Virus record (IMG/VR): IMGVR_UViG_3300042502_001233 | Location: 124,001 to 188,000 of that record | Length of the DNA stretch: 64,000 nucleotides | Direction: 5' to 3' (one strand) | Shown here: positions 19,681 to 60,077 of the stretch, one piece after another | Numbering within the stretch: position 1 is the first letter of the stretch | How the letters are laid out: each line of letters opens with the position of its first letter | Position numbers and translations under genes: made by a program | The notes under the pieces: model-generated | Seen by the model: only the letters and a program-made list of their open reading frames with translations | Told to the model about the DNA's origin: nothing | Database searches by the model: none

Positions 19681-21111
19681 ATGAATAAAAAAGAAAAATT
19701 TATAAATAAAGCAATAATTAAATTTGGTGATAAATTTAATTATGAAGAAATTGATTATATTGATTCTACAAAAAAAATAAAAATAAAATGTAATAAACAT
19801 GACTTATTTTTCTATCAATCCCCGTCTGAACATTTAAGGGGTAAAAATTCTTGTAATGAATGTACTAGAAACCCTAAAGTTAACACAAATTATTTTGTTC
19901 AAAAATCAAAAGAAATTCATGGTGATAAATATGATTATTCATTAACTAACTATATTGATTCATCAACAAAAGTAGATGTTATATGTAAAGAACATGGTGT
20001 TTTTAGTGTATTACCAAATAACCACTACAAACAAAATTGTCCAAAATGTAAAGAAAAAGATAGATATTTAACAACTAAAGATTTTATTGATAAAGCATGT
20101 ACCTTACATAATAAATATGATTATTCTGAAACAGAATATATGAATTCAAAAACTAAAATTAATATAAATTGCAAAGAACATGGTGTTTTTAAACAAATTC
20201 CCAACGACCATTTAAATGGGAAAGGTTGTCCAAAATGTGGTTTAGCTTATAATAAAATGGAAGATGAAATAAAAGAATTTATTAAATCTTTAAACATAAA
20301 TATTATAGAAAATTCAAAACAAATAATATCACCGTTAGAATTAGATATATTTATACCATCACATAATTTAGCTATTGAGTTTGATGGTTTATATTGGCAT
20401 TCTGAAGTTTATAAAGATAAAAATTATCATTTAAAAAAAACTGAACTTTGTCAAAGTAAAAATATTAGGTTAATTCATATATTTGAAGATGAATGGTTAT
20501 CTAAAAAAGAAATAGTTAAATCTAGATTAAAAAATATGTTAGGTTTAACACCAAATAAAATATATGGTAGAAAATGTGTTATAACAAAAGTTACAGCTAA
20601 AGAAACTAAAATATTTTTAGAAAATAATCACATACAAGGTAACGTTAATTCTAAAGTTAGGTTAGGGTTATATTATAATAATGAATTGGTTAGTCTTATG
20701 ACATTTGGCGGGTTAAGAAAAAACCTAGGGAATACATCAAACGAAAATAAATATGAGCTGTTTAGATTTTGTAATTTATCTAATCATATAATAATTGGTG
20801 GTGCAGATAAGTTGCTTAAATATTTTATCAAACATTATAAACCAAAAGAAATAATTAGCTACGCTGACAGAAGATGGTCACAAGGTGATTTATATAATAA
20901 ATTAAATTTTATTTTTTCACATAACACAAAACCAAATTATTTTTATTTGGTTAACGATAAAAGGGAAAATAGATTTAATTATAGAAAAGATATATTGGTC
21001 AAAGAAGGTTTTGATAAAAACAAAACAGAACATGGTATAATGTTAGAAAGAAAATTATATAGAATATATGATTGTGGTAGTATGTGTTTTAAAATTAAAA
21101 TGACCGATTAA
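19681..21111 (+). CDS. Free-standing endonuclease 1 (Zn-ribbon repeats + Vsr/PD-(D/E)XK-like nuclease + GNAT/Mom-like C-terminal domain)
   Basis: Three C..H...H...CPKC repeats; LDIFIP...AIEFDGLYWH; ELFRFC...GGADKL...SYADRRWSQGDLY; antisense to its neighbours. Confidence 0.75.
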   Translation: MNKKEKFINKAIIKFGDKFNYEEIDYIDSTKKIKIKCNKHDLFFYQSPSEHLRGKNSCNECTRNPKVNTNYFVQKSKEIHGDKYDYSLTNYIDSSTKVDVICKEHGVFSVLPNNHYKQNCPKCKEKDRYLTTKDFIDKACTLHNKYDYSETEYMNSKTKININCKEHGVFKQIPNDHLNGKGCPKCGLAYNKMEDEIKEFIKSLNINIIENSKQIISPLELDIFIPSHNLAIEFDGLYWHSEVYKDKNYHLKKTELCQSKNIRLIHIFEDEWLSKKEIVKSRLKNMLGLTPNKIYGRKCVITKVTAKETKIFLENNHIQGNVNSKVRLGLYYNNELVSLMTFGGLRKNLGNTSNENKYELFRFCNLSNHIIIGGADKLLKYFIKHYKPKEIISYADRRWSQGDLYNKLNFIFSHNTKPNYFYLVNDKRENRFNYRKDILVKEGFDKNKTEHGIMLERKLYRIYDCGSMCFKIKMTD

Positions 21112-21123
21112 TCGGTCATTTTA
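21096..21123. terminator. Perfect 28-bp palindrome / bidirectional terminator
   Basis: TAAAATGACCGATTAATCGGTCATTTTA; contains the stop codon of endonuclease 1. Confidence 0.75.
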
Positions 21124-21124
21124 T

Positions 21125-23626
21125 TTAACTTAACATAATTTTTTTTATTCTATTTAATTCTTCCATCAATTTATAGTTCTCATTTAAATCCATACTGTAT
21201 TGACCTTTATCATTTGGTTGAGGTTCAGCACTAGTTTGAGATGGATTTTTTTGTCTAGGCGCTGCACTAACATTTCGTTTTGTTTGTTTAGTTTTACTTT
21301 GTTTACCACTAGCAGCAGCTTGTTTTCTAAGTTTAACCATGTATTGAAACAACGCTATTGAATCATCCAAAAATTGTAATAAATGTTTTTTAAATTTCTT
21401 TCTGTCTTGAGCATTTTTTTCGAATTGTGTTCTAGCAGCATTAGGGTCGGCTTCATTCATTTTACCAATACCACCTAATTTATCAATTAGACCAGATTGT
21501 TTGTATTTACCAGTGTATATTGTTTTGAATATATCATTGATAAAGTTAGCCATATTTTGATATGCTTGTTGGTTTACAGTTACTATGTTGAACATTTTAT
21601 TAAAATCAGTCTTAACTATAGGGTTTTGTCTAAATCTTTCCAAAAATTGGTCAAAAACTTTATCACCAGTTGGTTTAAGGTTTCTAATTTTATTTCTTAA
21701 CTGTTCAACTCTGTTTAATAAATTTTCAAATTCTACAACTCTAGTTGGGCTAACGTTTTTGTTCAAAAACTTAACCAAAGCTTTATCTCTAAAGTATTTT
21801 GCTTCATCCAACATCTCTTCATCCAACAATGCTTCAGCTAAAGTATTTTTAGGTCCTTTACCAAATTTTTTCTCACTGTTAACAATAAAACCAAATAAAT
21901 TACGTAAAGAGTTGTATAAATCATCATTCATTGCTCCATCAGCGCTATTATCAGTTTTTGTTGTTTTTTGTTTTCCAGTATCTACTCCAGTTCCAGTGTC
22001 TACTCCTGTATCTACACCAGTTCCAGTATCTACACCAGTATCTGTACCAGTATCTACACCAGTATCTGTACCAGTATCGTTTCCTGTTTCATCACCTGTT
22101 GGGGCTGGTATCAAACCAACACCACCATCTAACCCACGCATAGATTGATACAACGCGTTAAGTGTTGCAGCTCTTGATGATTTTTGACCTTTCATTCTAA
22201 CCAATTTAACAGCAGCACCAGTAGCTAACAACCCAATACCAACACCAGCTAACACAGGACCTAAACCTATTAACTTACCAGCTAACGCAGTACCAGCTCC
22301 TTTTACAAGCGTTTTAGTTGCTTGTTTAACAACAATAGTTGCAAAGAATTTAGCAGAACTAGATACACCAAATAGGTTTTGTCCACCACTCATACTACCA
22401 AAAGTTTGGTCAGCTTTGTTGAATAAATCACCCATACTAGCTTGAGGGTTAGAACTAATCATTTGTTGTAATTTTTGCATTTGACCCATTGAGTCGCCAC
22501 CACCATTACCATCAAACATGTGACTAACGTTTTCTGAACCAAATTTGTCAACAAATTGCTGCATATCAGCACCAGTTTTAATATCTTTACCCATTAACTT
22601 ACTAGCCCAATGAACAAAACCTTGTTTGTCATCTGGTCCACCAGTAATATCTTGAGTTATAGCTGGTGTTCTAACTATTTTATCACCACCACCTAGTACC
22701 GTTTCTAACCAAGTTTTAAACCATTCAGTTTGAGCCATCCATCCTAATGCACCTAACGCAGCACCAGTTCCAGCCAATATCAATGGTAATTTGTTAGATT
22801 TAAGGGTATCCATCCTTGTACTATCAAAATCTTCACCATCACCTCTTTTAGCTTGTAATTTAGACCTAATATCACCAGAATCTAAAGGGTCTTCGTCAGG
22901 GGCTACGTCTTCATAATCAACATCTTCAATATCGTTATTTGATTTATAGTTACCAGCACTACCTTGTCCACTAACTTTTGGCCCAGTAGTACCCATTTGT
23001 GAATTACCAGTTCTAGCTGGAAGAGCTTCATCTATACCAAAATATTCATCAATTTGACACATTTGTTCTTCATCAAGGTCATATTCTTCATTCATCAAAT
23101 CATCTTCACCTAGTTTGTCTTCACTCTCATCAAAACCAGAATAAACAGCAGCTAAGTCAGTATCTAAGAATTTTTTTGTGTAGTCTCTTAAATCAGTAAT
23201 AATACCATTAGCAGCGTCAATCGGCATATAACCTTCTTCCTGTGGTGCTTTTTTAGTTGCAGCAACAACTGAATCATATATTGCAGCGATTTCCATAACA
23301 GTTTTTAAGAATTGTTGTGGGTCTTTATTATTAGGGAAATCAGGATTTTCTTCTCTAATTTTAGAATCAAGATTTTTAATTAACTCATTACCTTCTTTAT
23401 CAATAATTTGTTGGATTTTTCTTGCAGCTTCTTGGTCAATTTTACCTTTTCCGAAAATTTTACCGTTGGCTTTGTATCTACCTAATTTAGATAATCCGTA
23501 TTTTACAGAATCCCAAAAACCTTCATCTAACCTTTCGTTACCTTCTATCTTTTCTAGTGTTTCTTTAAGGATTTCATTGATGATAACTGTATGTTGTTGT
23601 TCTGTAAGTATTAATTTTTTAGCCAT
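21125..23626 (-). CDS. Putative internal head/ejection protein with hydrophobic helices and DTG repeats
   Basis: 833 aa; leader MAKKLILTEQQ; many (L/I/M)xE motifs; two Gly/Ala-rich hydrophobic stretches. Confidence 0.55.
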   Translation of the reverse strand: MAKKLILTEQQHTVIINEILKETLEKIEGNERLDEGFWDSVKYGLSKLGRYKANGKIFGKGKIDQEAARKIQQIIDKEGNELIKNLDSKIREENPDFPNNKDPQQFLKTVMEIAAIYDSVVAATKKAPQEEGYMPIDAANGIITDLRDYTKKFLDTDLAAVYSGFDESEDKLGEDDLMNEEYDLDEEQMCQIDEYFGIDEALPARTGNSQMGTTGPKVSGQGSAGNYKSNNDIEDVDYEDVAPDEDPLDSGDIRSKLQAKRGDGEDFDSTRMDTLKSNKLPLILAGTGAALGALGWMAQTEWFKTWLETVLGGGDKIVRTPAITQDITGGPDDKQGFVHWASKLMGKDIKTGADMQQFVDKFGSENVSHMFDGNGGGDSMGQMQKLQQMISSNPQASMGDLFNKADQTFGSMSGGQNLFGVSSSAKFFATIVVKQATKTLVKGAGTALAGKLIGLGPVLAGVGIGLLATGAAVKLVRMKGQKSSRAATLNALYQSMRGLDGGVGLIPAPTGDETGNDTGTDTGVDTGTDTGVDTGTGVDTGVDTGTGVDTGKQKTTKTDNSADGAMNDDLYNSLRNLFGFIVNSEKKFGKGPKNTLAEALLDEEMLDEAKYFRDKALVKFLNKNVSPTRVVEFENLLNRVEQLRNKIRNLKPTGDKVFDQFLERFRQNPIVKTDFNKMFNIVTVNQQAYQNMANFINDIFKTIYTGKYKQSGLIDKLGGIGKMNEADPNAARTQFEKNAQDRKKFKKHLLQFLDDSIALFQYMVKLRKQAAASGKQSKTKQTKRNVSAAPRQKNPSQTSAEPQPNDKGQYSMDLNENYKLMEELNRIKKIMLS
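21978..22082 (-). repeat. In-frame DTG(T/V) tandem repeat
   Basis: Encodes DTGTDTGVDTGTDTGVDTGTGVDTGVDTGTGVDTG. Confidence 0.85.
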
Positions 23627-23696
23627 ATTAAACTTTTAATTATAAATATTTGATATTAATTAAAAAGTTCGTATCTTTGTAGATAAAACCATTATT

Positions 23697-24356: not shown

Positions 24357-24432
24357 AATCTTTTTACTATAAATATCATATAAAACAAAAAAGCTCCCAT
24401 ATTTGGAAGCTTTGATGTTTTGTTTATTTTTA

Positions 24433-24474
24433 TTAGATATTATCAAAAGAAGCACCAGTATTCATGATAACAAA
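24433..24474 (-). pseudogene. Orphan duplicate of the sheath 3' end (FVIMNTGASFDNI*)
   Basis: 42 bp matching 26362-26403 with one synonymous mismatch; 38 bp identical. Confidence 0.9.
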
Positions 24475-24524
24475 ATTTTATTTTTTTTATTGACTTATGT
24501 TATATTTATTAGTATATTTGTATT

Positions 24525-26333
24525 ATGAAAAAAATAAATAAATTTTTAGAAAAATGTAATAATGTACATGGTAATGTATATGATTATTCTTTAGTTAATT
24601 ATATTAATAATAAAACTAAAGTTAAAATAATTTGTTCGATTCATGGTGAATTTGAACAGACACCAGACAAGCATATAAACTCAAAACAAGGATGTCCAAA
24701 ATGTTCGTCAAACTATAAATTAACAAATGAAAATTTTATAACTATATCAAATAAAATCCACAAGAATACTTATAATTATACCAACACAGTTTACTTAAAT
24801 GCAAATTCTGATGTTGATATAATTTGTGAACATCATGGTCTTTTTAAACAAAGACCTAGTGCACATATGTCAGGTCAAGGGTGTCCAAAATGTGCTGGTA
24901 AAAATAAAACCAACAGTGAGGTAGTTAATGAATTTGTTACTGTTCATAAAGATAAATACGATTATTCTTTAGTTAATTATGTTAACCAAAAAACACCATT
25001 AAAAATACTATGTAAAGAACATGGTATTTTTGAACAAACCTATAACACACATAAAAACGGTCACGGGTGTCCAAAATGTGTTGGTAGGAATAAAACAAAC
25101 GAACAATTTATTAAACAAGCAAAAAAAATACACAATAATAAATACAATTATTCGTTGGTTGATTATAATAAATCCAACGATAAAATAAAAATTATATGTC
25201 CAATTCATGGTGAATTTGAACAAAATTCAAACAACCACTTAAATGGAAATGGTTGTCCAAAATGTAAGGGGTTATCAATAATAGAAAAAAAGACAAAGAC
25301 AACTGAACAGTTTATAAGTGAAGCTAAACTTGTTCATGGTGATAAATATGATTATTCTTTAGTTGAATATAAAAATTGTAAAGATTGTATTAAAATTAAA
25401 TGTGTAGAACATGGTGAGTTTGAACAAACACCAGAAATACATTTATCTGGTTGTGGTTGTCAAAAATGTGGTTTTAAATACAATTATAACGAAATCATGA
25501 TAAGCGATTTTATTAAAAGTTTAAATATAAAGACAATTAATAATTCTAGAAAAATAATATCACCACTAGAATTAGATATATTTATACCATCACATAATGT
25601 AGCAATTGAATACAACGGTTTATATTGGCATAGTGAAATAAATAAACCATCTAACTATCATTTAAATAAAACTGAAATGTGTGAAAAACAAGGTATTCAG
25701 TTAATCCATATTTTTGAAGATGAATGGTTATACAAACAAGATATTGTAAAATCTAGACTAAAAAATATATTAGGGTTAACACCCAATAAAATATATGCTA
25801 GAAAATGTGTTATAAAAGAAATAGATATTGAAACATCAAAAAAATTTTTAAATGAAAACCATATTCAAGGTAATGTAAATAGTAGTATTAAAATCGGATT
25901 GTTTTATAATAATGTGTTAGTCAGTTTAATGACATTTGGTAAGGGTAGGATAGCCCTAGGTGGTAATTCAAATCAATTTGAATTGCTTAGATTTTGTAAT
26001 AAATTAGAATCTATCGTTATTGGTGGTGCAGATAAATTACTTAAATATTTTATAAAAACCTATAACCCAAAAGAAATAATTAGTTATGCTGATAGAAGAT
26101 GGAGTCAAGGTGGTTTATACGATAAATTAAACTTTATTAAAACTCATAACTCACAACCAAATTATTGGTATATTAACAATAATCGAAGAGAATATAGATT
26201 TGGTTATAGAAAATCAATACTAGTTAAAAAAGGTTTTAACCCAAATAAAACCGAACACCAAATTATGTTAGATAGAAAAATATACCGAATTTATGATTGC
26301 GGTAATATAGCATACAAAAAAACCCTCTATTAA
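24525..26333 (+). CDS. Free-standing endonuclease 2, paralogue of 19681..21111
   Basis: 602 aa; five Zn-ribbon repeats; the same IISPLELDIFIPSHN and IHIFEDEWL nuclease region and GNAT-like tail. Confidence 0.75.
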   Translation: MKKINKFLEKCNNVHGNVYDYSLVNYINNKTKVKIICSIHGEFEQTPDKHINSKQGCPKCSSNYKLTNENFITISNKIHKNTYNYTNTVYLNANSDVDIICEHHGLFKQRPSAHMSGQGCPKCAGKNKTNSEVVNEFVTVHKDKYDYSLVNYVNQKTPLKILCKEHGIFEQTYNTHKNGHGCPKCVGRNKTNEQFIKQAKKIHNNKYNYSLVDYNKSNDKIKIICPIHGEFEQNSNNHLNGNGCPKCKGLSIIEKKTKTTEQFISEAKLVHGDKYDYSLVEYKNCKDCIKIKCVEHGEFEQTPEIHLSGCGCQKCGFKYNYNEIMISDFIKSLNIKTINNSRKIISPLELDIFIPSHNVAIEYNGLYWHSEINKPSNYHLNKTEMCEKQGIQLIHIFEDEWLYKQDIVKSRLKNILGLTPNKIYARKCVIKEIDIETSKKFLNENHIQGNVNSSIKIGLFYNNVLVSLMTFGKGRIALGGNSNQFELLRFCNKLESIVIGGADKLLKYFIKTYNPKEIISYADRRWSQGGLYDKLNFIKTHNSQPNYWYINNNRREYRFGYRKSILVKKGFNPNKTEHQIMLDRKIYRIYDCGNIAYKKTLY

Positions 26334-26344
26334 GAGGGTTTTTT
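26317..26344. terminator. Bidirectional terminator containing the endonuclease 2 stop codon
   Basis: AAAAAACCCTCT-atta-AGAGGGTTTTTT. Confidence 0.75.
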
Positions 26345-26361
26345 ATTTATTATTTTAATAA

Positions 26362-29202
26362 TTATATATTATCAAAAGAAGCACCAGTATTCATGATAAC
26401 AAACTCAAGTTGAATAAACTCTAAAGCTCTAGTTGGCTTCAAGAAAATTTGACCTGTAAGTTGATTTCTGTCGATATCTTCTGGGTCGTTTGAAAGAACC
26501 ACTCTAAAGTCTGTAAGACCTCTTTCACTTCTAATGTTATCTAAGATTGGGTTAACCAACGCTAAGAATTGATTTCTAACCACGTTATCATTTTGTTCAA
26601 ACAACAATCTGATAGAAACAGCAGAGATAAGTTTTCTTGCTTGTAACAACAATCTTCTTACGTTAATTCTGTCAAGAGCAGACTCTTTAACTTGCATTGT
26701 TTTATTACCCCAGATTTTAATACCATCTGTTGTAAACGTAGCGATTGGGTTGATTCTAGCTTCGTACAACGTATCTCTTTCAGCAAGAGTAAGTTTTTTA
26801 CGAGCTTGGATTGCATCAACATCACCTCTGTTAATACCAGCAACCGCGAACCAAGGGAAAGCAATGTTGTCAGTAAGAGCGATGTTTCTAACTACATCTC
26901 TTGTTGGCGGCATCCAAATGTAAACGTTGTTTTCTGTATCGTTTACTTGAATCCATGGCCAATAAGTACAAGAGTAGTTACTATCATACATACCATCTAA
27001 ACGGTCAGAAACTTCTTCAGCGCTTATTACATCACCAGATAAATCAGTATCTGGTGTTGTCATAATGTACAACGAGTCAGCTCTATCTTGTTCAACCATA
27101 TCGATTGTAGCTTCAATTAAGTTGCTGTTGTAATCGTTGTCGATACCTGGGGTTGCGAATACGTTAATATTAACAGCTTCTGGGTTTCTAAATGTCCAAA
27201 TAGCTTCTAGGTAAGCATAGTAATCAGAGTTGATACCAATATCACCGTTAGTAAGAGTTCTATATTTGAATATTTCACTTTGTAAACCAGCTTGTCCGTT
27301 AGTACCATTTACGACGAAACTATCTAAATTACTTCTTCTAGTTCTGTAAATATCCCAACCATCAAAACCACCGTAAGGTACAAATGTAAATTTACGTGCA
27401 AATATTTTTTCATAGTCAGTTCCTAACACACCAGCTTCAGTTCTAAACTCAGCATTACCAGTATCAAATAGGAATACTGGAGAATATGTGTCACCACTTG
27501 AGTTAATAACAATTTTAACATTGTCAATTGTAGCACCAGTAGCGTCAATATCCATGTGGAAACCATGTGTCATACCAGTCCACATATTTGAATCACCAAC
27601 TGTTGGAATACCTTTATAGTCAAAGAAATCAGAATCAATACCTAAAGTCTCAGAAAGACCTAAGAAAACTTTACGTTTATTTTCAAAAGCGCTATACGCT
27701 CTTTTATACGTTAACGTTGGGTCAACAACTGATTGTCCGTTTGAATCGTAATCTCTAATAGGGAAACCAATAAAACCAGCTGGGAAAGTTGTGCTAGTAT
27801 CACTAGTGTCATCCATTTCAATAAGAACGTAAGATGATTTTGAAGGGTATTCACCATTATAAGTACCAATTCTTCTAGCTATATAGTTGTTAGATGTTGG
27901 GTCAAGAGTACAACGACTAAAGCTTTCCAAGATTGTTGGTTGAGCGTCAGTATCGAAATAACTTCTTATAATAACATCAAACTCTTTAGTGTCTAATTTA
28001 ATATTTCTAATAGATATTTTGAATTGTTCGTTAGCAGCGTTACCATCAGAAATAGTCCAAAATCTGAATAATCTCAATACTTTAGTACCACGTAATTCTG
28101 ATACAACATATGGAGTTACAGCTGGGCTGTATTCTTGTAAGTAATCATCAAAACTTCTGTCATAATCAACAAGAGCTTGTTTTAAACCTCTGATTTTACC
28201 AGCTGCTCTGTCATCTTTAAACATTTCTCTATAGAATTCTTCAACAAACAAAGCTGTATTACCATCATCGTTAGTTCTACCTAATACTCTAGGTAAATAA
28301 TTTTGTTTTGTATTATCCATAGATAGTTGGTAACTAAACGCACCTTGTGTTGTTGATGTACCAGTCAATACAAAATCACCAACAGGGTTTGTAGTAGAAG
28401 TTGTAATACTTGTACTGAAATTTACGTTAGTTGAAGCTGTTATTTCAAATGCTGGAGATTGTAAAGTTGGGTCAACAGAACCTCTAGAACGTAACAACGC
28501 AACCAATTTATCTTCAATACCGCTATAAACAGTACCTGAATAAGTTACTGTAACACCAGTTGTAGAACCTGTTACAAAACCACCTGAAGTACCTACTGAA
28601 GTTACTTTTAAATCAAAAGAAATACCGTTAAAATTAGCACCCACTTTTTCATAATAAGGACCAACACTAACAACATCATTTACAGATGAAGTAGCCAAGA
28701 ATGCTAATTCAGAAGTCAATGTACCATCATTGATAAGTGTTTGAATCAAAGGAACTGAAGAAACAACTGTTACGTTAGTACCACCAGTTGTTGCTGTAAA
28801 TGTTATGAAATTTGAAGTTACTGAAGTTCCAGTGTTTGTTGTTACAACCGAAGCTGGGTCCAAAGCAGCATCCAAAGTGATACCCCATGCAAAACCAGCA
28901 TCATATCCAGAAAACCCTAATACTCTAGTTACGAATAATTGGTTTGATTGTGTTAAATATGATTTAGCGATGTATGGTAATTCATATTTAGGTGCCCCTG
29001 TGTCTTTAACTCTAGTCGCATTTTGCCCACCAAAGAAAGATTGGAACTCGCCATAGTTACCAACAAATATAGGTTGGAATGCTGGACCAATTGTAGTCTC
29101 ACCAACTAAACCTAATGTTGTTACACCTATCTGACGTGTGATAAAAGATAAGTCTTTTTCTGAAGTATATACACCAGGACTTACGAATACTTTTGTTGCC
29201 AT
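26362..29202 (-). CDS. Tail sheath protein
   Basis: 946 aa; VFVSPGVYTSEKD, GLVGETTIGPAF, YWPWI, PWFAVAG..RG, WGNKT, LDRINVRRLL, KPTRALEFI. Confidence 0.92.
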   Translation of the reverse strand: MATKVFVSPGVYTSEKDLSFITRQIGVTTLGLVGETTIGPAFQPIFVGNYGEFQSFFGGQNATRVKDTGAPKYELPYIAKSYLTQSNQLFVTRVLGFSGYDAGFAWGITLDAALDPASVVTTNTGTSVTSNFITFTATTGGTNVTVVSSVPLIQTLINDGTLTSELAFLATSSVNDVVSVGPYYEKVGANFNGISFDLKVTSVGTSGGFVTGSTTGVTVTYSGTVYSGIEDKLVALLRSRGSVDPTLQSPAFEITASTNVNFSTSITTSTTNPVGDFVLTGTSTTQGAFSYQLSMDNTKQNYLPRVLGRTNDDGNTALFVEEFYREMFKDDRAAGKIRGLKQALVDYDRSFDDYLQEYSPAVTPYVVSELRGTKVLRLFRFWTISDGNAANEQFKISIRNIKLDTKEFDVIIRSYFDTDAQPTILESFSRCTLDPTSNNYIARRIGTYNGEYPSKSSYVLIEMDDTSDTSTTFPAGFIGFPIRDYDSNGQSVVDPTLTYKRAYSAFENKRKVFLGLSETLGIDSDFFDYKGIPTVGDSNMWTGMTHGFHMDIDATGATIDNVKIVINSSGDTYSPVFLFDTGNAEFRTEAGVLGTDYEKIFARKFTFVPYGGFDGWDIYRTRRSNLDSFVVNGTNGQAGLQSEIFKYRTLTNGDIGINSDYYAYLEAIWTFRNPEAVNINVFATPGIDNDYNSNLIEATIDMVEQDRADSLYIMTTPDTDLSGDVISAEEVSDRLDGMYDSNYSCTYWPWIQVNDTENNVYIWMPPTRDVVRNIALTDNIAFPWFAVAGINRGDVDAIQARKKLTLAERDTLYEARINPIATFTTDGIKIWGNKTMQVKESALDRINVRRLLLQARKLISAVSIRLLFEQNDNVVRNQFLALVNPILDNIRSERGLTDFRVVLSNDPEDIDRNQLTGQIFLKPTRALEFIQLEFVIMNTGASFDNI

Positions 29203-29529: not shown

Positions 29530-30114
29530 TTAATTCCTTTGGTTTATCGAATATATTATTTCACTTGGTGTTATATATGAAGCAAAAATATAATTTATTC
29601 CCCCAATAGAATAATTTCCACTCCCAGTTAATTTTTTAAATTCACTACTAAAAGTAGGTAAAGTACTACCACTATGTATAAGAATATTTGTAACACCTAA
29701 CAAACCATTTGCTGTGTTTGCTGTTATTGTTGTACCTGTTTCAGGTAATGTAAGAGTTCCATATACTGTATCAGTAACAAAAGATAAAACGACACCATTA
29801 CTACTTTCCGCTTCTGTTGATAAGGGAATATAACCATTATATGTTGTTGCTGATATTGTGTTTGACATTAAACCACTTGTAAAGTTAGTAAAACCTGTTA
29901 CTGTCCCACCACTTAAAGGTAAATAATCTCCTGTAATAGGGTAGTTATCATCTAATATTTGTGACCACATTGAAATACCGTCTTTATTTACGTATAATAT
30001 ACCTGTTTCAATATCAATATACGTACAACCTCTAGTGGAAATATGTGTTGGATACCCTTTACCACTTTGATAAAAGATTGAACCGATTTTAAACGAACTA
30101 ATTTTTTCTGACAT
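29530..30114 (-). CDS. Small fibre-module protein
   Basis: 194 aa; YLPLSGGTVTG fibre motif; C-terminal module shared with 32378..32860. Confidence 0.6.
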   Translation of the reverse strand: MSEKISSFKIGSIFYQSGKGYPTHISTRGCTYIDIETGILYVNKDGISMWSQILDDNYPITGDYLPLSGGTVTGFTNFTSGLMSNTISATTYNGYIPLSTEAESSNGVVLSFVTDTVYGTLTLPETGTTITANTANGLLGVTNILIHSGSTLPTFSSEFKKLTGSGNYSIGGINYIFASYITPSEIIYSINQRN

Positions 30115-30131
30115 TTTTATTTATTTTTTTT

Positions 30132-39322: not shown

Positions 39323-39324
39323 TT

Positions 39325-39597
39325 ATGGTAACAATTTACACAATGCAAAACTGCCCATATTGTGCAGAATTAAAAGAACTTCTAACTACTGAAAATATCG
39401 AATTTAACGATATAGATATTTTTGACAAAAAACATGAAAAAGAAGTTGGAGAAATAATGGAAGCGTCAAAAGCTGAAGAAGTTCCAATAGTTAGGATTGA
39501 AAAACAATTATTCATCCCTAACGTTTCTTTTAAAAGTATTACAGAAGCTTGCTATTTGGTTAAAAAAATATTAAGTGATTCCGATATAACTTCATAA
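39325..39597 (+). CDS. Glutaredoxin (NrdH-like)
   Basis: YTMQNCPYC active site, VP motif. Confidence 0.85.
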   Translation: MVTIYTMQNCPYCAELKELLTTENIEFNDIDIFDKKHEKEVGEIMEASKAEEVPIVRIEKQLFIPNVSFKSITEACYLVKKILSDSDITS

Positions 39598-40640
39598 TAA
39601 GGTATTCTAATTAATCTAATATTATTATCAAGACAAAATTTTGTCTTGATAGAATCGTTATGTTTTATTTTTAAAAAACCTAGTTCACCGCCAAATTTGT
39701 TTATAGGTTTATAATGTTGGATTCCGTCGTATTCAATACATATATTATGGTTTGGTAAATAAAAATCAAACGGTAGTACTTGAATGTTTTTGCAATTTAC
39801 AAACGTGTGTTGTTGCTTAAATAAAATATTATTTTCAACTAGATATTCCCTAATCTTTTTTTCACCTTTTGATTCTTTACAAATAGGGCAACCATTGCCC
39901 CTCAAGTGCATATTAGGGGTCTGGTTAAACATACCATGAACAGGGCAAATTATTTTAACTTTAGTTTTTGATTTTAAATAATCAACCATAGAGTAGTCAT
40001 ATTTATTACCATGTATTTTTTTAGCTTCTAAAATAAAATCATTATTAGTCTTATCCCTACCAACACATTTTGGACATCCTTGTTTTAATTTAATGTGAGC
40101 ACTTGGTAATTGTTCAAACACACCATGAACAGGGCAAATTATTTTCATTTTAGTTTTAACGTTTTTAAACTGTATTGATGAATAATCATATTTATCACCA
40201 TGTGTTTTTTTAGCTTCTAAAAGAATATCTTTAGTTGTTTTAAACAACCCATTACACTTACCACATGTTTGACCTTTTAAATGATTATCTGGTGTTTGTT
40301 CAAACATACCATGAATAGGGCAAATTATTTTAACTTTAGTTTTAGCATTTTTATAATTAACTAAAGAATAATCATATTTATTATTGTGTATTAAAATAGC
40401 CTCATTAATAAATATATTATCCTTTTTCCTAGTATTTTCACTAATTTTATCATAACCACATTTATTACAACCTTGTCCCCTAGAAATATGGTGATGTGGC
40501 GTTTGTTCAAACATACCGTGAATAGGGCAAATTATTTTTACTTTGGTCCTAACATCTTTATAATCAACTAATGAATAATCATACTTATTTTCATGTATTT
40601 TTTTAGCTTTTTCGATAAATTTTAAATTTTTATTTTCCAT
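39552..40640 (-). CDS. Free-standing endonuclease 3 (Zn-ribbon repeats + PD-(D/E)XK/DUF559-like nuclease)
   Basis: Four CPxHG...H...C..C repeats; LPFDFYLP...IEYDGIQH; RLIRIPY; late motif upstream. Confidence 0.75.
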   Translation of the reverse strand: MENKNLKFIEKAKKIHENKYDYSLVDYKDVRTKVKIICPIHGMFEQTPHHHISRGQGCNKCGYDKISENTRKKDNIFINEAILIHNNKYDYSLVNYKNAKTKVKIICPIHGMFEQTPDNHLKGQTCGKCNGLFKTTKDILLEAKKTHGDKYDYSSIQFKNVKTKMKIICPVHGVFEQLPSAHIKLKQGCPKCVGRDKTNNDFILEAKKIHGNKYDYSMVDYLKSKTKVKIICPVHGMFNQTPNMHLRGNGCPICKESKGEKKIREYLVENNILFKQQHTFVNCKNIQVLPFDFYLPNHNICIEYDGIQHYKPINKFGGELGFLKIKHNDSIKTKFCLDNNIRLIRIPYYEVISESLNIFLTK

Positions 40641-40765
40641 AATGTGTTTTTATATAAATATCTAATATATAATAAAAAGACAACTTAAGTATATTTTTTT
40701 TTTATTAACTAAAAAATTTATTGGTTAATTTAAAAAATTCTTATATTTATAAGAAAAGATAAAAA

Positions 40766-55014: not shown

Positions 55015-55017
55015 AAC

Positions 55018-55476
55018 ATGCCTACAGTTTACAACGGTGGTCAATCACCATTAGAAAATTATGCAATTAACGGTAACCCAATATATCCTGGGACTGGTAG
55101 ATTAGCTATTATACAACAAACTAGAATTGGTACTGGTAAATATAATTTCCAAGGTCCATATAAAAATCCACAAATTACAGGTAACTTAAACGATGTTTAC
55201 GGAGCTACCAATACAAACGCATTGGCTGATAACTTATCACCATACAACGGTAGAGGTACTGGTGACGGTGTAACTAACGGTGTATATGCAGCAATTACTA
55301 ACTATGCTGGTGGTAACATCGAAGACATAAACGGTGTTGCTTCTTATGCGGGTTCTGGTAGAAATCAAGAAGTCACACTTAATGCTGCAACTTGGGGTTA
55401 CGGACCATCAGCTATTGCTGGTAGTAACTATGTAATACCTAACACAGCTAGTAACATTGGTCAAGTAATAATCTAA
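55018..55476 (+). CDS. Gly/Asn-rich small virion protein
   Basis: 152 aa; composition and late-operon context. Confidence 0.5.
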   Translation: MPTVYNGGQSPLENYAINGNPIYPGTGRLAIIQQTRIGTGKYNFQGPYKNPQITGNLNDVYGATNTNALADNLSPYNGRGTGDGVTNGVYAAITNYAGGNIEDINGVASYAGSGRNQEVTLNAATWGYGPSAIAGSNYVIPNTASNIGQVII

Positions 55477-55490
55477 AAAAAAAATATTTT

Positions 55491-55988
55491 ATGAAGCTTT
55501 ACAATATCTTTGAAGAAGTTATATTAGAAGAAATCAAGAAAAATTCTCAGTTAATTTCTGAGGGTGTTTCTTCTGATGCGGTTAAAGCTGTTATCAGGGA
55601 TAAAGTAAATGTAAACATACTTTATCAAGATTATGTTGACCAACCACCTAGTAAACGATATATACAAGTATATAATTACGCATCAACTAAAGTAAACAAC
55701 GACTCAATTAGAGCGTATCAAATTAGTGGTGGTTCAAAAACTAAAAAACCAAATAGTTGGAAAATATTTTTGTTAGATAAAATAGTTGGTTGGTATCCAA
55801 CAAACATGAAATGGCAAAACCCTGTATCTGATTATGACGCTAGTATTCCAGCTTATAATCAGTTAGGTGATAGAACAATGAGTCAAGTTTATGATAAAGT
55901 CAACCCAGATACGTTCACAAGACAAAGAAGTGATATCTATCAAAACCCTAACTTAACACAAGATAACGAAGAAGACGAAGAATTTTAA
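55491..55988 (+). CDS. Stand-alone WYL-like domain protein
   Basis: KRYIQVY...SIRAYQ..G.S...WKIFLLDKI pattern. Confidence 0.5.
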   Translation: MKLYNIFEEVILEEIKKNSQLISEGVSSDAVKAVIRDKVNVNILYQDYVDQPPSKRYIQVYNYASTKVNNDSIRAYQISGGSKTKKPNSWKIFLLDKIVGWYPTNMKWQNPVSDYDASIPAYNQLGDRTMSQVYDKVNPDTFTRQRSDIYQNPNLTQDNEEDEEF

Positions 55989-55992
55989 AATT

Positions 55993-56604
55993 ATGGATGT
56001 ACCAAAACCAGTAGACATAGGTGCTTTAAGTGCTTTATTAGGTAAAGCAAAACAAGTAATGAATGTGGTAGAATCTAGAGCTCCAGAAAAAAAACAAGAA
56101 AGAGGTCGAGATTTCGACCCTAGAGACTCATACAATCAATCAATGTTTGATAACGCTCCAATATATAACGAATCTGACGAAAGAGAACCTATTTATGAAA
56201 ATTATCAACAATCAGCACCACAAGGTATTGTTCAAAACCATGACTACACACCAGAACAAATTATGGCGTCAAATTTACCTCCAATAGTAAAAGAAGCGAT
56301 GTTAAAAAACCCAATCCCTAGATTGAGTGGACCACCTTCAAAAGTTAGCGCTGAAGAGATTGCTAGAATAACTGGAGCTAAAATTAGAACACCACAAAAA
56401 CAACAAAGACAAGTTATTTCTGAAGGTATAGTGAGTGATGATATGATAACAATTAGCAAAACTCAATTACAAGATATGATTAATGAATCAATTAACACTT
56501 TTTTTAAACAAACGTACAATAAAACTGTTACAGAAGAAACAATAAAAAAGACAATTAATCTACTAATAAAAGAAGGTAAAATACAAACTAAAAGAAAAAT
56601 ATAA
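55993..56604 (+). CDS. Hypothetical protein
   Basis: 203 aa; LPPIVKEAMLKNPIP; ISE/INE motifs. Confidence 0.6.
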   Translation: MDVPKPVDIGALSALLGKAKQVMNVVESRAPEKKQERGRDFDPRDSYNQSMFDNAPIYNESDEREPIYENYQQSAPQGIVQNHDYTPEQIMASNLPPIVKEAMLKNPIPRLSGPPSKVSAEEIARITGAKIRTPQKQQRQVISEGIVSDDMITISKTQLQDMINESINTFFKQTYNKTVTEETIKKTINLLIKEGKIQTKRKI

Positions 56605-56633
56605 AAAAAAGGGGTTTAATAACCCCTTTTTTA
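56604..56633. terminator. Intrinsic terminator
   Basis: AAAAAAGGGGTT-taat-AACCCCTTTTTT. Confidence 0.75.
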
Positions 56634-56696
56634 TTTACTATTTGTTTTTAAAACGATATATTTAAAAATCAATAAAATGTTTTAAAACAAATTTTC

Positions 56697-56753
56697 ATGA
56701 AAAAATTAAAAGTATTGGTAGTGCCTTCAGACCGTACAGGTGTAAGCTACTTT
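56697..56753 (+). pseudogene. Orphan 5' end of the glycosyltransferase (MKKLKVLVVPSDRTGVSYF)
   Basis: Hand translation; the frame runs on into the cassette and stops at 56819. Confidence 0.85.
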
Positions 56754-56796
56754 GACTTTTTTTATGTTTTTCTATATATTTATAATAAAATAACTT

Positions 56797-57693
56797 ATGG
56801 AAAAAGAAACAGAAAATAAAATTATTAACCTTTATTTAAGTGGGGTAGGTTCGACAACAATAATAAAGTTAATCCCAAACATAACAAAAAAAAATGTTTT
56901 GAAATTATTAAAAGAAAAAAACATATTAAGAAATCGATTATTAGGTGACGAATTTTATAAAGATTATTGGTTTGATGGTGAATATTGGTGTGGGTTATGG
57001 GTTTGTGAATCATGTAATAATAAAATTAATTTTTCAGTTAAAGAAAAAAGTTTATTAAATAGAAATTTAAAAAGAAAAAAAATATGTAAAAAATGTTCAC
57101 TAGAAAATCAAATAGGTGAAAATAACCCATTTTTTAATAAAAAACATTCAATTGAATCAATAATTAAAATATCAAAAAGTAAAATTGGTATAACAACTAG
57201 CGACCATATGAGTAAATCTGAATATAGAAAAATGTTTAGTGACATGGCTAAAGAACGTTGGGGTAATGGTAGTATGGAAGAAACAAGAATTAAATTAAGT
57301 AATCTAATGAAAGAAAGAATTTCATCAGGTTTATTAAAAAGTTATAATAGGTCTAAAGCAGAAGATGAATTAATATTAACATTAGAAACTAAAAATATTT
57401 TAGTCGAACCAAATTATCTATTAGAAGGTAAAATATTTGATTTATATATACCTAAATTTAATTTATTAATTGAATATAATGGAGATTATTGGCATTGTAA
57501 CCCACAAAAATACGAATCTAATTATTTAAACACTAAAAAAAATAAAACAGCTAAAGAAATTTGGGAGTATGATGCTAAAAAACTTTACTTAGCCAAAAAA
57601 AATCACTATAATTGTGAAGTAATTTGGGAAACAGATTACAAAAAAAATAAAAACATAATATTAAACATATTAAAAAAATATGAAACAAACTAA
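56797..57693 (+). CDS. Free-standing endonuclease 4 (HTH + Zn finger + NUMOD3 + Vsr/DUF559-like nuclease)
   Basis: CESC...CKKC; GENNPFFNKKHS; RSKAE...FDLYIP...IEYNGDYWH; VIWE. Confidence 0.8.
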   Translation: MEKETENKIINLYLSGVGSTTIIKLIPNITKKNVLKLLKEKNILRNRLLGDEFYKDYWFDGEYWCGLWVCESCNNKINFSVKEKSLLNRNLKRKKICKKCSLENQIGENNPFFNKKHSIESIIKISKSKIGITTSDHMSKSEYRKMFSDMAKERWGNGSMEETRIKLSNLMKERISSGLLKSYNRSKAEDELILTLETKNILVEPNYLLEGKIFDLYIPKFNLLIEYNGDYWHCNPQKYESNYLNTKKNKTAKEIWEYDAKKLYLAKKNHYNCEVIWETDYKKNKNIILNILKKYETN

Positions 57694-60077
57694 TTTAAAC
57701 ATCACCCCAGTTAGTCGAAAAATCAAGGTATTAGTAGTACCTAGCGACAGGACTGGGGTGAGCTGAAAGCTACTTCCGTTCAACAAACCCACACATCGCA
57801 TTAGAAAACAATTACCCAGATGAGTTTTCAGTAGATATTGATTATGAACCACAATTAAATAACGATGAGTGGTTAAAACAATATGATATCATTCATTACC
57901 ATAGAACACTTGGTAGTTACGAACAAATGCCACAATTATTACAACATCTAGATAATTTAGGTATAATCACCATTATGGATTTAGATGACCATTGGGCTCC
58001 AGGCCCACACCACCCAGCATATCACATTATTAAATCTTCTGGGTTAGATAAAAAGATATTAGACAACATTAAGTGCGCTAGAAACGTAACAACAACAACA
58101 CGTTTATTTGCAGAAGAAATAGCTAAACACAATAAAAATGTTTTTGTTCTTCCAAACGCAGTTGAACCAACTGAGAAACAATTTACTCCAAACTTAGAAA
58201 AATCTGATAGAATTAGAATTGGATGGTTAGGTGGTTCGTGTATGACACCAGATACTGAAATTCTAACCGATGAAGGTTGGAAACGATTTGATGAATTGGA
58301 CCAAACAGAATTGGTTGCAACGTTAAACCCAAAAACAAATCAAATGGAATATCATAAACCAGTTGGGTATATATGTGAACCGTTTGATGGTGAATTGAAT
58401 TGTGCTAAAAATGGTTTAATTGAATATGAAGTTACACCAAACCATAATATGTATGCTTCTGTTGCTAAATCATTGACACATAAAAAATTAAATCTAGAAT
58501 TAATTCAATCTGAAAAAATACATGGTAAAAATTTTCATGTTAAAAAAGATGCTATTTGGATGGGTGAAGAAAAAGAGTTCTTTATTTTACCAATGTTAAA
58601 CGAATATCATGAAATTGAGGAAAATGAAAATTTTATTGATAGGTTAATATCTAAAAAACGCTATAATGGGTTATCTGGAAAATATAGTTCAGATAAATTT
58701 ATAGATATGGATAAGTGGTTAGAATTTTTCGGTTTTTGGTTAGCTGAAGGTTGGACTAGTAAAACAAAAGGATTACATCAAGTTGGTATTGCTCAATCAA
58801 AAGATAATAATTATTTATCACATATGTATGATTTATTAATTGAAATTGGGTTCAAACCAACATATACTAAAGATAAAAAACAAATTAGAGTTTTTGATAA
58901 ACAACTATGGGAATATTTATCAAATTTTGGAGATGCTTACGATAAATTTGTACCAAAAGAAGTTTTAGAGTTATCTAGAAGACAATTAACTATTTTTTTA
59001 GAATGGTTTATTAAAGGTGATGGTCATATTGAAAAAAATAAATATAATAGAACTAGAGCGTTTACATGCTCACCTTCATTAGCTAATAATTTACAAGAAA
59101 TTGCATTAAAAATAGGTATATCAGCAACTATAACAAATAGGGGTAAACGAACATCAGAAATTAAAGGTAGAGCTATTAATAATCAATATGATTCGTTAGT
59201 TGTTAATTTTACTAAACACCCTAGCGTTAGTAAACATAATAAAAACACGCCATTAGTTAAAAGTGAAGACCAATATAATAGATACTATAAAGGTAACGTG
59301 TATTGTGTTGAAGTTAAAAACCATATCATTTATGTAAGGAGAAATGGTAAAGCGATGTGGATTGGTAACTCACACTTGAAAGATTTGGAGATTCTTAATG
59401 GCGTTGTCACTAAATTAAGAACTGATGGATTGATTGACAAAGTTCAATTTGTTTTGTGTGGTTTTGATACAAGAGGTACACACACAGAAATTGACCAAGC
59501 AACTGGTGAGCAAAAAGTAAGACAAATTACACCTATGGAAAGTGTTTGGTTTAGATATGAAAAAATATTTACAGACAACTATCAAATCGTTAGTCCAGAG
59601 TATAAATCTCATCTTATGAAATTTACGTTGGATGAATTCCCAAATGTTGCTAACGAACCGTATCGCAGAGTTTGGACAAAACCAATATCAACCTACGCGT
59701 CAAACTATAATTTATTTGACATCTCTTTGGCACCGTTAGAAGAAAATATATTTAACAAAGTTAAAAGTCAGTTAAAAGTTATCGAAGCTGGTTTCCACCA
59801 TAAAGCTATCATTGCTCAAGACTTTGGACCATATAAAATTGATTTAAAGAACGCGATTCAATATGGTGGTGGTTTTGATGAAACAGCTAACGGTATCCTT
59901 ATTGATTCTAAAAAGAATCACAAAGATTGGTATACTTCGTTGAAAAAATTAATAACAAACCCTAATATGATTCCAATCCTTCAAGAAAATCTTTATAACA
60001 CTGTTAAAGACACATATTCAATGAACAAAGTAACTGAGGATAGAAAAGAATTATATTTAAAATTAACACAAAAATAA
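57680..60077 (+). CDS. GT-B (GT4-like) glycosyltransferase with intein; 5' part interrupted by a 7-nt out-of-frame insert with TGA at 57764
   Basis: KVLVVPSDRTGVS*|SYFRSTNPH...DLDDHW...NVTTTT...VLPNA...RIGWLGGS|SHLKDL...DISLAPL...FNKVKSQLKVIEAG; frame open from 57762. Confidence 0.75.
57702..57761 (+). other. GC-rich stem-loop within the recoded gene start
   Basis: TCACCCCAGT/ACTGGGGTGA outer stem; GTCG/CGAC and AGGTA/TACCT inner stems. Confidence 0.7.
58239..59369 (+). mobile_element. LAGLIDADG intein in the glycosyltransferase (377 aa)
   Basis: Starts CMTPDTEILTDEGWK, ends WIGN, +1 residue Ser; FFGFWLAEG and WFIKGDG motifs. Confidence 0.9.

Follow-up and report, generated by a model that had tools for sequence, protein, structure and literature searches.

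In a 362-kb lake-water phage, selfish nuclease genes have inserted into the ends of useful genes and brought a replacement gene end with them, and one of these replacements is joined to its gene across a 4-nt gap that begins with a stop codon, suggesting that ribosomes probably have to hop over it. The window analysed here is a stretch of 64,000 nt (positions 124,001 to 188,000 of IMG/VR record IMGVR_UViG_3300042502_001233); related sequences are given L numbers. An earlier note, made from the sequence alone, had described two of four free-standing nucleases with Vsr-like domains that restore a 3' end and a 5' end in mirror image, each cassette with its own promoter, and the observation that two of the four are flanked by duplicated gene ends is confirmed. 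The relevant features are as follows.

19681..21111 (+), free-standing nuclease of the same family as 24525-26333; a plain intergenic insertion with no gene-end duplication.
24390..24413 (-), hairpin terminator that directly follows the sheath stop in the empty-site relative L003; here it follows the orphan copy.
24432..24474 (-), orphan duplicate of the last 13 codons plus stop of the tail-sheath gene; donor-type sequence except for its last codon.
24490..24518 (+), promoter-like TTGACT-17-TATATT directly upstream of the nuclease ORF, overlapping a 21-nt motif also found upstream of the 19681 nuclease.
24525..26333 (+), free-standing homing-endonuclease gene (602 aa), antisense to the sheath gene, with repeated DUF723/DUF4379 zinc-finger modules, a weak MTES_1575 (Vsr-like) nuclease match and a Mom-like C-terminus.
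26317..26344 (+), two-way hairpin terminator between the nuclease stop and the sheath stop, part of the cassette.
26361..26403 (-), working copy of the sheath 3' end (the second repeat copy), in a ~65-nt tract of foreign-type sequence.
39552..40640 (-), fourth free-standing nuclease (DUF723/CapR/DUF4379); no flanking duplication was found.
56697..56753 (+), orphan native 5' end of a glycosyltransferase (GT) gene (19 codons, MKKLKVLVVPSDRTGVSYF), running into cassette sequence to a stop at 56819.
56752..56780 (+), left end of the cassette, promoter-like TTGACT-17-TATATT.
56797..57693 (+), free-standing homing-endonuclease gene (298 aa) with a NUMOD3 motif and a C-terminal Vsr / I-Bth0305I-like catalytic domain.
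57680..57763 (+), cassette-borne replacement 5' end of the GT gene, 28 codons made of a new ATG, an 11-codon extension and GT codons 3-17; it overlaps the nuclease stop.
57703..57760 (+), conserved hairpin (-30 kcal/mol), with its 5' arm in the N-terminal extension and its 3' arm in the codons for DRTGV, ending at the take-off codon.
57761..57770 (+), proposed bypass site: take-off AGC (57761-57763), gap TGAA (57764-57767), landing AGC (57768-57770).
57768..60077 (+), body of the GT gene (GT-B fold, GT4-like), open from 57762 with its first ATG only at 57927, and interrupted by an intein at 58239-59369.

In the sheath case, the direct repeat of 43 nt is 42/43 identical, the one difference being a synonymous Ile codon; the right copy is the working 3' end of the tail-sheath gene (26362-29202, minus strand), whereas the left copy is an orphan followed by the old sheath terminator. 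The nuclease is absent in the close relative L003, which has 97% sheath identity and an uninterrupted site; homologues sit at the same site in L009 and remnants in L010, L011 and L073. The last ~65 nt of the sheath gene are 83% identical to L003, against 97.7% just upstream, indicating that this tract is of foreign type. In the GT case, a translated repeat KVLVVPSDRTGVS occurs at 56697-56753 and at 57680-57763. The close relative L085, with 97% GT identity, carries the uninterrupted site; the window flanks are 96-97% identical to L085 and the last 180 nt before the insertion are identical. The orphan is identical to the L085 allele, while the replacement copy differs at many synonymous sites.

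These duplications are more than chance. In a scan of 371 ORFs of the whole genome, the two cases rank at the top for nucleotide score (40; median 11) and at about the 97th percentile for translated score (71; median 41). The absence of any enrichment of flanking gene-end duplications had been named beforehand as the outcome that would overturn the idea, but they occur at 6/25 nuclease genes against 6/346 other ORFs in this genome (Fisher p=3.6e-5). Three GIY-YIG cases elsewhere in the genome show the layout orphan 5' end, then nuclease, then full gene. The GT cassette recurs in at least 71 distinct phage sequences, and 10 of 63 related GT cassettes keep an orphan, each cut 1-3 codons after the same Ser/Gly codon and followed by the cassette's TTGACT-like motif.

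The Vsr-like domain of the 56797-57693 protein is confirmed by structure, its top PDB matches being I-Bth0305I (3R3P; target-normalised TM-score 0.77) and Vsr (1CW0, 1VSR); D215, E226 and H233 are invariant in the alignment, and nearly all relatives lie directly upstream of a GT gene. For 24525-26333 the support is weaker, consisting of a sub-threshold Pfam MTES_1575 match plus strong PHROG homing-endonuclease matches. The claim that each cassette carries its own promoter rests only on consensus matches just upstream of each nuclease ORF, in an AT-rich genome where such matches are not enriched.

The note's interpretation, a recurrent mobility strategy in this phage group, is partly supported. 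Both cassettes do carry a replacement gene end, but this is not a property of one nuclease family: nine other insertions of the 24525-type family in related phages have no gene-end duplication, and neither do the 19681 and 39552 nucleases, whereas the three GIY-YIG nucleases do. The many GT cases share one insertion site and one cassette, so they represent spread of one element and not independent inventions, and the logic is already known from fungal mitochondrial mobile ORFs that carry a foreign gene C-terminus (PMC3630166).

The most unusual part, the coding gap, was missed in the note. The rebuilt GT 5' end is not continuous with the gene body but reads AGC TGA A AGC TAC, with a stop codon and a +1 frame change at 57764-57767. 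The gap is real: contigs of two independent DNA runs match it with 0 differences, and no insertion or deletion at the gap is listed for contigs from two RNA libraries, although the latter may be carried-over DNA. In 71 distinct junctions a stop follows the take-off codon in 71/71; the same or a same-tRNA codon recurs 2-8 nt later in 61/71, and take-off and landing codons share their first two bases in 65/71. Ten junctions have imperfectly matched codons (AGY to GGC, AGC to AGA, GGT to GGA), and the repeated codon could partly be a scar of how the cassette joins its target. Shifts run from +5 to +11 (and +13 in L121), and 28 are out of frame, so readthrough cannot explain them; a hop restores the exact length seen in homologues. 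The N-terminal piece is under protein-level selection: the invariant Ser is encoded by AGC, AGT, TCA, TCG and TCT, and the family-invariant P, S, D and G are kept. It also forms strand 1 and the Gly loop of the first Rossmann domain, so the body alone should not fold, and the body frame has no start codon before 57927. L090 and L091 have lost the nuclease but keep the gap, the hairpin and an intact GT frame.

A stable hairpin ending at the take-off codon, with compensatory changes, accompanies every gapped allele and is lacking in unbroken alleles. In its alignment 91% of cells are paired, and 16 double-change cells are seen against 5.8+-2.2 in shuffles (0/500), whereas slid controls give 29-45% paired; the sequences are related, so the shuffle statistics overstate independence. 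The 72 nt ending at the take-off codon fold at -30.5+-3.1 kcal/mol with z = -5.7 in 71/71 gapped alleles, while in 29 unbroken alleles the values are -7.4 kcal/mol and z about 0. The hairpin lies just after the nuclease stop, so it could instead serve the nuclease transcript.

Among the closest known systems is T4 mobA with the 50-nt translational bypass of gene 60 (reported by Bonocora et al. 2011; Manning & Atkins, bioRxiv 10.1101/2022.08.31.505936). There too a free-standing endonuclease gene lies directly upstream of a coding gap near the 5' end of the downstream frame, take-off and landing codons match, a stop follows the take-off codon and a 5' stem-loop is present; the gene 60 bypass travels with a homing endonuclease and survives its loss, and Vsr-type nucleases occur in some gene 60 cassettes. 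However, the host gene differs (a GT4-like GT, not topoisomerase) with no sequence relation, and the gap here, whose bypass is inferred, is 2-10 nt instead of ~50, so there is usually no take-off stem-loop inside it and no Shine-Dalgarno site within it; the dominant signal is a long hairpin 5' of the take-off codon, and the cassette rebuilds a 5' end rather than splitting a gene in two. In the fungal mitochondrial mobile ORFs that create hybrid genes (Allomyces atp6, Paquin et al. 1994; Glomus atp6/atp9/cox2/nad3, PMC3630166), an endonuclease ORF inserts near a gene terminus together with a foreign, diverged copy of it, and the native terminus remains beyond as an orphan that matches close relatives. 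The sheath case follows the same 3'-end logic, of which the GT and GIY-YIG cases are the mirror image. Those ORFs are usually fused in frame to the host gene and only C-termini are known, whereas here the nucleases have their own start and promoter-like site, one is antisense, 5' ends are rebuilt as well, and the sheath orphan is donor-type. Free-standing seg/mob genes of T4-type phages, which move by intronless homing (PMC2988022), likewise lie between or beside conserved genes, show presence/absence polymorphism among close relatives and co-convert flanking sequence, as in the sheath tract, with different nuclease families in similar niches; classical seg/mob genes sit in intergenic DNA and leave neighbouring genes collinear, whereas here the insertion point is inside the coding sequence and is compensated by a carried gene end. 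I-Bth0305I (EDxHD, Vsr-like) is intron-encoded, whereas the 56797-57693 protein, a nuclease by fold and homology, is free-standing and has a NUMOD3 motif and an N-terminal helix-turn-helix-like region.

Among alternative readings, it is about as likely as not that the duplications are incidental scars of sloppy, one-sided break repair or replication slippage, not a strategy, and persist only until recombination deletes them. Only 10 of 63 GT cassettes keep the orphan, the nine other insertions of the sheath-type family have none, L009 has at the sheath site only a ~30-nt repeat of a terminator half (3 of 1000 shuffles reach its score), and orphans show decay. This view concerns the orphan only, since the replacement end is needed in every case because the insertion point lies inside the coding sequence; it is compatible with the explanation below and partly adopted in it.

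It is unlikely that the junctions are decoded by other recoding routes, namely stop-codon readthrough for the in-frame (+6, +9) forms and +1/-1 frameshifting for the others, stimulated as in prfB by the G-rich, Shine-Dalgarno-like tract 2-3 nt before the P-site codon together with the stop in the A site, with 1-3 extra residues in the product. In favour of this, 43 of 71 junctions are in frame, GGGG or GGAG always lies just 5' of the take-off codon, the Gly codon is GGR in 21/21 gapped alleles against 12/27 unbroken ones, and a stop in the A site is the classical prfB arrangement. However, three different mechanisms would be needed for one conserved element, AGC and GGY P-site codons offer no re-pairing in the +1 or -1 frame, shifts of +5, +7, +8, +10 and +11 all restore the exact homologue length only if the gap is skipped, and the repeated same-tRNA codon has no role in this model.

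Similarly unlikely is that the GT gene is simply broken, with the short N-terminal ORF and the hairpin, which begins 10 nt after the nuclease stop, serving the nuclease gene, for example as a transcript 3' end, a stability element or a translational control, and their conservation reflecting recent spread of the one cassette that all cases share. Against this, the GT body frame is intact in all 71 cases, at 40-79% identity; the N-terminal piece never carries an internal stop or frameshift and keeps the GT-invariant residues through many synonymous changes, including Ser codon-family switches; the stop is always exactly at the junction; the element and an intact GT persist after nuclease loss; and an intein is maintained in the window's GT. 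Removal of the interruption at the RNA level (a small intron, editing or cut-and-ligate repair) or an assembly error is very improbable, since T4-like phages encode RNA ligases but nothing specific here supports it, no Rfam family including group I/II introns matches the region, no group I boundary fits because a U before the 5' site and a G at the intron end cannot both be met within the 8-nt repeat, the non-ORF sequence is only about 120 nt, two independent DNA runs match the gap exactly and no insertion or deletion at it is listed for contigs from two RNA libraries, and the same design appears in 71 independent assemblies.

We therefore favour, with moderate confidence, homing-endonuclease cassettes that have entered the terminal codons of host genes and carry a substitute copy of the severed terminus, so that the host gene stays whole. 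The anatomy, the empty sites, the comparative regularities and the nuclease and GT folds are established by the analysis, whereas cleavage specificity, the repair pathway and the bypass are inferred, the last from comparison only. The likely origin is repair of a nuclease-made break in which one side recombines in the gene body and the other joins at the cassette edge, leaving the recipient's own terminus behind as an orphan. The sheath cassette, made of a terminator, an antisense nuclease gene and a promoter-like site, arrived with a foreign gene end, but its orphan is donor-type and not recipient-type, so that duplication came with the cassette and its origin is not explained by this scheme. 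The GT cassette, made of a promoter-like site, a Vsr-like nuclease gene and the new 5' end, sits exactly where the native 5' end is cut off. We propose that the ribosome, holding peptidyl-tRNA-Ser on AGC with UGA in the A site, slides 7 nt and re-pairs on the next AGC, which would yield a GT of exactly normal sequence (..TGVS-YFRS..). The strong hairpin, possibly with its G-rich 3' arm, would drive or bias this forward movement as it re-forms behind the ribosome; pairing of mRNA leaving the ribosome has been proposed as the driver of forward bypassing (bioRxiv 10.1101/2024.12.09.627546). In this view, the gap exists because it breaks the nuclease's own target site in the restored gene, as proposed for T4 mobA and the gene 60 gap.

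The 362,018-bp virus record from which the window (bases 124001-188000) is taken was recovered from lake-water metagenomes; the window is about 30% G+C and encodes T4-like tail genes, including a 946-aa tail sheath at 26362-29202 on the minus strand. Many relatives at 70-97% identity occur in IMG/VR, but a nucleotide search of cultured phage records with the sheath gene gave no match, protein searches of cultured phages found only distant relatives, and no cultured phage was found with the nuclease-glycosyltransferase (GT) arrangement described below. ORF and family scans of the window give four free-standing nuclease genes:

19681-21111, a 476-aa nuclease
24525-26333, a 602-aa nuclease, antisense to the sheath gene
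39552-40640, minus strand, a 362-aa nuclease
56797-57693, a 298-aa nuclease

The first three share repeated DUF723/DUF4379 zinc-finger modules and match PHROG homing-endonuclease families strongly (E 1e-115 to 1e-164 for 24525-26333), and two of them, including 24525-26333, have a weak MTES_1575 nuclease match. The fourth has a NUMOD3 motif. A PDB sequence search with this 298-aa protein returned only a NUMOD3-type hit to I-TevI, so its fold had to be assigned by structure prediction; a model built on 16 relatives (pLDDT 82) has a C-terminal domain whose best PDB matches in a Foldseek search are the I-Bth0305I catalytic domain and Vsr. The Vsr-like assignment that the earlier note made for two of the nucleases is therefore confirmed for this one and plausible for the others. 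No flanking repeat was found at 19681-21111, which was considered as a possible 3'-end case but is a plain replacement of the intergenic region relative to the close relative L003, and none was found at 39552-40640, which lies between an SNF2-type helicase gene plus a 90-aa ORF and a 379-aa ORF with no family match (window 37487-41905). An identical 21-nt motif, TATTTATTAGTATATTTGTAT, lies upstream of two of the nuclease genes, at 19616-19636 and 24503-24523 (0.09 matches expected by chance), and may be a shared promoter or control site of this cassette family. In the 833-aa gene at 21125-23626 (minus strand), 12-nt periodic repeats at 21963-22106 encode a run of (T/V)G(V/T)D units.

At the 3' end of the sheath gene, a 43-nt direct repeat (24432-24474 and 26361-26403, 42/43 identical) brackets the 602-aa nuclease. 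The right copy is the real end of the sheath gene (..FVIMNTGASFDNI stop), whereas the left copy is an orphan followed by the hairpin terminator and the next gene. In L003 (97% sheath identity) the sheath stop is followed directly by that same terminator and gene, with no nuclease. The window and L003 are 97.7% identical over the 300 nt before the last 84 nt of the gene but only 83% identical in those 84 nt, with a sharp foreign tract of ~65 nt, which suggests that the 3' end was replaced together with the cassette. The orphan carries the same foreign variants except for its last codon, so that the duplication came with the cassette rather than being the leftover of the recipient. The cassette also has a two-way terminator (26317-26344) and a TTGACT-17-TATATT match right before the ATG. 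A homologous nuclease sits at the same site in the relative L009 without a coding duplication; only a weak ~30-nt repeat of a terminator half is seen there, and 3 of 1000 shuffles reach its score. Decayed remnants sit at the site in the relatives L010, L011 and L073. The sheath-end duplication is not typical of this nuclease family, since nine other insertions of the family in relatives score at background for flank duplication.

At the 5' end of the GT gene, a 19-codon ORF start, MKKLKVLVVPSDRTGVSYF (56697-56753), lies upstream of the 298-aa nuclease and then runs into the promoter-like TTGACT motif of the cassette. Overlapping the nuclease stop, a second start (57680) encodes MKQTNLNITPVSRKIKVLVVPSDRTGVS followed by a stop. 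In the close relative L085 (97% identity, from the same metagenome as L003), an empty site (GGTGTAAGCTACTTCCGT), the first sequence continues directly into ..SYFRSTNPHIAL.., the gene body that in the window resumes at 57768. The window therefore equals the L085 allele plus an insert of about 1 kb; the 180 nt before the insert are identical, the orphan is identical to L085 while the carried copy is diverged, and the sequence after the insert is 97% identical with no conversion tract downstream of the gap. The gene is a GT-B, GT4-like glycosyltransferase. In the window it is also split by a 377-aa intein with a LAGLIDADG domain (58239-59369, between GGS and SHLKDL), which is absent from the 97% identical allele in L085, so that the same gene hosts two different selfish elements.

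The replacement 5' end does not run into the gene body, a point that the earlier note missed. The sequence reads GTG AGC TGA A AGC TAC TTC, and the body frame opens only at 57762. No start codon lies in the body frame before 57927, and reinitiation after the stop was rejected on this ground. Relatives of the nuclease were collected from IMG/VR and from metagenomes, and almost all lie directly upstream of a GT homologue. They fall into two classes. Class B has the nuclease upstream of an unbroken GT with a normal short N-terminus. Class A comprises 71 distinct junction sequences with the design seen in the window: an 8-13-codon N-terminal extension, the conserved GT codons up to ..G-V-(S/G), a stop codon immediately afterwards in 71/71 (TGA 45, TAA 22, TAG 4) and, after a 2-8-nt gap, the same or a same-tRNA codon (61/71; the first two bases are equal in 65/71), followed by the body. 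The implied shifts are +5 (4), +6 (38), +7 (6), +8 (12), +9 (5), +10 (1) and +11 (5), plus +13 in L121, a related locus; 28 are out of frame. Skipping the gap always restores the exact length and sequence pattern of unbroken homologues. The longest gap variant (L121:3885-3985, also in the related loci L122 and L124) reads GGC, then TGAATTTAAA, then GGA, and has a second predicted 8-bp hairpin that contains the stop codon, closer to the gene 60 take-off stem-loop. An aragorn scan of the whole genome gave 45 tRNA genes, including Ser(GCU), Gly(GCC) and Gly(UCC), the tRNAs for the take-off codons seen, and a tRNA with anticodon CUA at 44350-44423. The idea that TAG is avoided as the gap stop because of this last tRNA was dropped, as TAG occurs in 4 of the 71 junctions.

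Several features suggest that the N-terminal piece is translated as part of the enzyme. The family-invariant residues P10, S11, D12 and G15 lie before the gap and R20 after it, and in gapped alleles these residues are kept through extensive synonymous change, with Ser encoded by AGC, AGT, TCA, TCG and TCT. In the predicted structure, residues 4-9 are the first strand of the N-terminal Rossmann domain, 10-15 the loop, and helix 1 starts at 16, so that a body lacking them should not fold. Two relatives, L090 (nuclease reduced to about 25 codons) and L091 (no nuclease), still have the extension, the gap and an intact GT frame.

The N-terminal extension is predicted to pair with the codons for (D)RTGV in a long hairpin 5' of the take-off codon, with arms at 57703-57712 and 57751-57760 in the window. 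On 13 sequences, 91% of cells pair and five pairs show changes on both sides (CCCCAGT/ACTGGGG, CCCCTGT/ACAGGGG, CTCCGG/CCGGAG); there are 16 double-change cells against 5.8+-2.2 in shuffles (0/500), and slid controls give 29-45% paired. One covarying pair includes the first base of the take-off codon. Over all 71 gapped alleles, the 72 nt ending at the take-off codon fold at -30.5+-3.1 kcal/mol (z = -5.7; all below -2), with the last paired base 1-4 nt from the end of the codon, whereas 29 unbroken alleles give -7.4 kcal/mol and z about 0. Gap and hairpin thus co-occur without exception.

Contigs from two independent lake DNA runs match 57476-57855 and 57610-57816 with no differences, and on this together with the 71 assemblies an assembly error was rejected. 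Contigs of 3.1-3.6 kb from two metatranscriptome libraries, belonging to a ~94% identical strain, span the orphan, the nuclease and the junction, and no insertion or deletion is listed at the gap, although DNA carry-over cannot be excluded. A group I or group II intron around 56754-57775 was likewise rejected, since no Rfam family, intron or otherwise, matches the region, there is too little non-ORF RNA, the boundaries cannot satisfy the U/G rule, and the contigs from the RNA libraries list no insertion or deletion at the gap.

The simplest account is a homing-endonuclease cassette that replaces the 5' end of its target gene. We propose that its junction must be bypassed by the ribosome: peptidyl-tRNA would leave the take-off codon when a stop occupies the A site, and re-pair a few bases on. 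The closest precedent is T4 mobA with the gene 60 gap, where the gap also sits beside a free-standing endonuclease gene, outlives it, uses matched codons and a stop, and has a 5' stem-loop. Re-folding of mRNA behind the ribosome has been proposed to drive forward movement. In the GT element the matched codons (AGC/AGC in the window), the stop and the 5' structure are all found, but with gaps of 2-10 nt, far shorter than that of gene 60, a stem-loop formed by the take-off codon and the start of the gap is lacking; only a 4-bp AGCU/AGCU pairing is predicted in the window, and a real 3' hairpin only in L121. The 5' hairpin is the dominant signal. There is no homology to the gene 60/topoisomerase cassette, the host gene being a GT-B glycosyltransferase, and the published survey found bypass homologues only in topoisomerase genes. 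The G-rich 3' arm of the hairpin lies 2-3 nt before the P-site codon and also resembles the prfB stimulator, so a mixture of frameshifting and readthrough remains a rival. Ten of 63 class A loci keep an orphan, each cut 1-3 codons after the take-off-equivalent codon and followed by the TTGACT motif of the cassette, which places the insertion point, and presumably the cleavage site, at the gap. The gene-end duplications, the empty and occupied sites and the conserved gap and hairpin are observed directly, while site-specific cleavage of the nuclease-less allele, immunity of the cassette's own allele and the production of one polypeptide from the two frames are inferred; that the gap protects the restored target from the nuclease of its own cassette is an inference by analogy.

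To ask whether the pattern is general, as the earlier note had suggested in proposing a recurrent mobility strategy, we scanned 371 ORFs of the whole genome for similarity between left and right flanks. Six of 25 nuclease genes reach the threshold against 6 of 346 others (odds ratio about 18, p=3.6e-5), and one of the others itself matches a homing-endonuclease PHROG family. Flanking repeats were found at these genome positions:

12137-12946, 17198-17965 and 29531-30169 (loci L181, L182 and L183), three GIY-YIG/NUMOD endonuclease genes each flanked by an orphan and a full copy of a neighbor's 5' coding end (37, 88 and 26 residues), the copies being 55-65% identical in two of the cases
55200-57000 (locus L184:900-2700, minus strand), a release-factor-like gene with a GGQ motif and an in-frame TGA (..GMITI TGA ISGYN..) at a position where RF2 has a normal residue; a diverged 5' copy of the gene lies on the other side of a 263-aa zinc-finger protein of unknown function (translated flank repeat score 154)
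285076-285849 (locus L185), a 257-aa ORF with no family match, flanked by an 89-nt direct repeat (284724-284812 and 285842-285930) with the highest nucleotide flank score in the genome (77)
292169-293137 (locus L186), a nuclease-like gene matching PHROG homing-endonuclease family phrog_3339, flanked by duplicated 5' ends MNIFVLD..KKCA.YH (28 aa)
331454-332359 (locus L187), a nuclease-like gene of the DUF723/DUF4379 type, flanked by duplicated 5' ends KF..LTDE...SERTVRKWFK (~50 aa)

The three GIY-YIG genes show the layout orphan 5' end, then nuclease, then full gene; the flanked genes are a MUG113/T5orf172 gene, a 241-aa gene and a NUDIX-like gene, the last with the nuclease antisense, and none has a gap. 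The pattern is therefore recurrent in this genome and across nuclease families, but it is not a fixed trait of one family. The same logic, for C-termini, is established for fungal mitochondrial mobile ORFs (PMC3630166), in which a foreign copy of the gene terminus lies next to the nuclease ORF and the native terminus is left as an orphan. The GT case follows this arrangement, whereas in the sheath case the duplication is present but the orphan is donor-type; moreover, the phage nuclease ORFs are not fused in frame to the host gene but are separate with their own ATG. Our literature searches, of an incomplete library, found no description of such gene-end rebuilding in phages and none of a bypass-like element in GT genes. 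Taken together, the observation made in the earlier note is confirmed, as two of the four nucleases are indeed flanked by duplicated gene ends, but its reading of them as a general system holds only in part. The conserved gap-plus-hairpin element is a strong candidate for a new family of translational bypass sites, pending a direct test.

We consider it somewhat more likely than not that a second, independent and widespread family of programmed translational bypass elements exists in uncultured freshwater phages, with 2-10-nt coding gaps hopped from a Ser/Gly codon over a stop, driven by a long hairpin immediately 5' of the take-off site, and traveling with a Vsr-like homing endonuclease as a portable new 5' end whose gap protects the restored gene from its own nuclease. 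Efficient programmed bypassing has rested essentially on one natural example, T4 gene 60 and its homologues in topoisomerase genes. A separate family with at least 71 natural variants, in which the gaps are short and of varied length and the 5' hairpin is very strong, would give a compact system to test what drives ribosome sliding, in particular the idea that mRNA re-folding behind the ribosome drives the movement, and would also support the view that bypass gaps arise as self-protection for homing endonucleases. Independently of the bypass, the data show that phage homing endonucleases of several families can enter coding sequence by carrying a substitute gene end, which matters for phage genome annotation, where orphan mini-ORFs and 'frameshifted' genes will be misread, for recombination-boundary analysis, and for understanding how such elements reach new genomic contexts.
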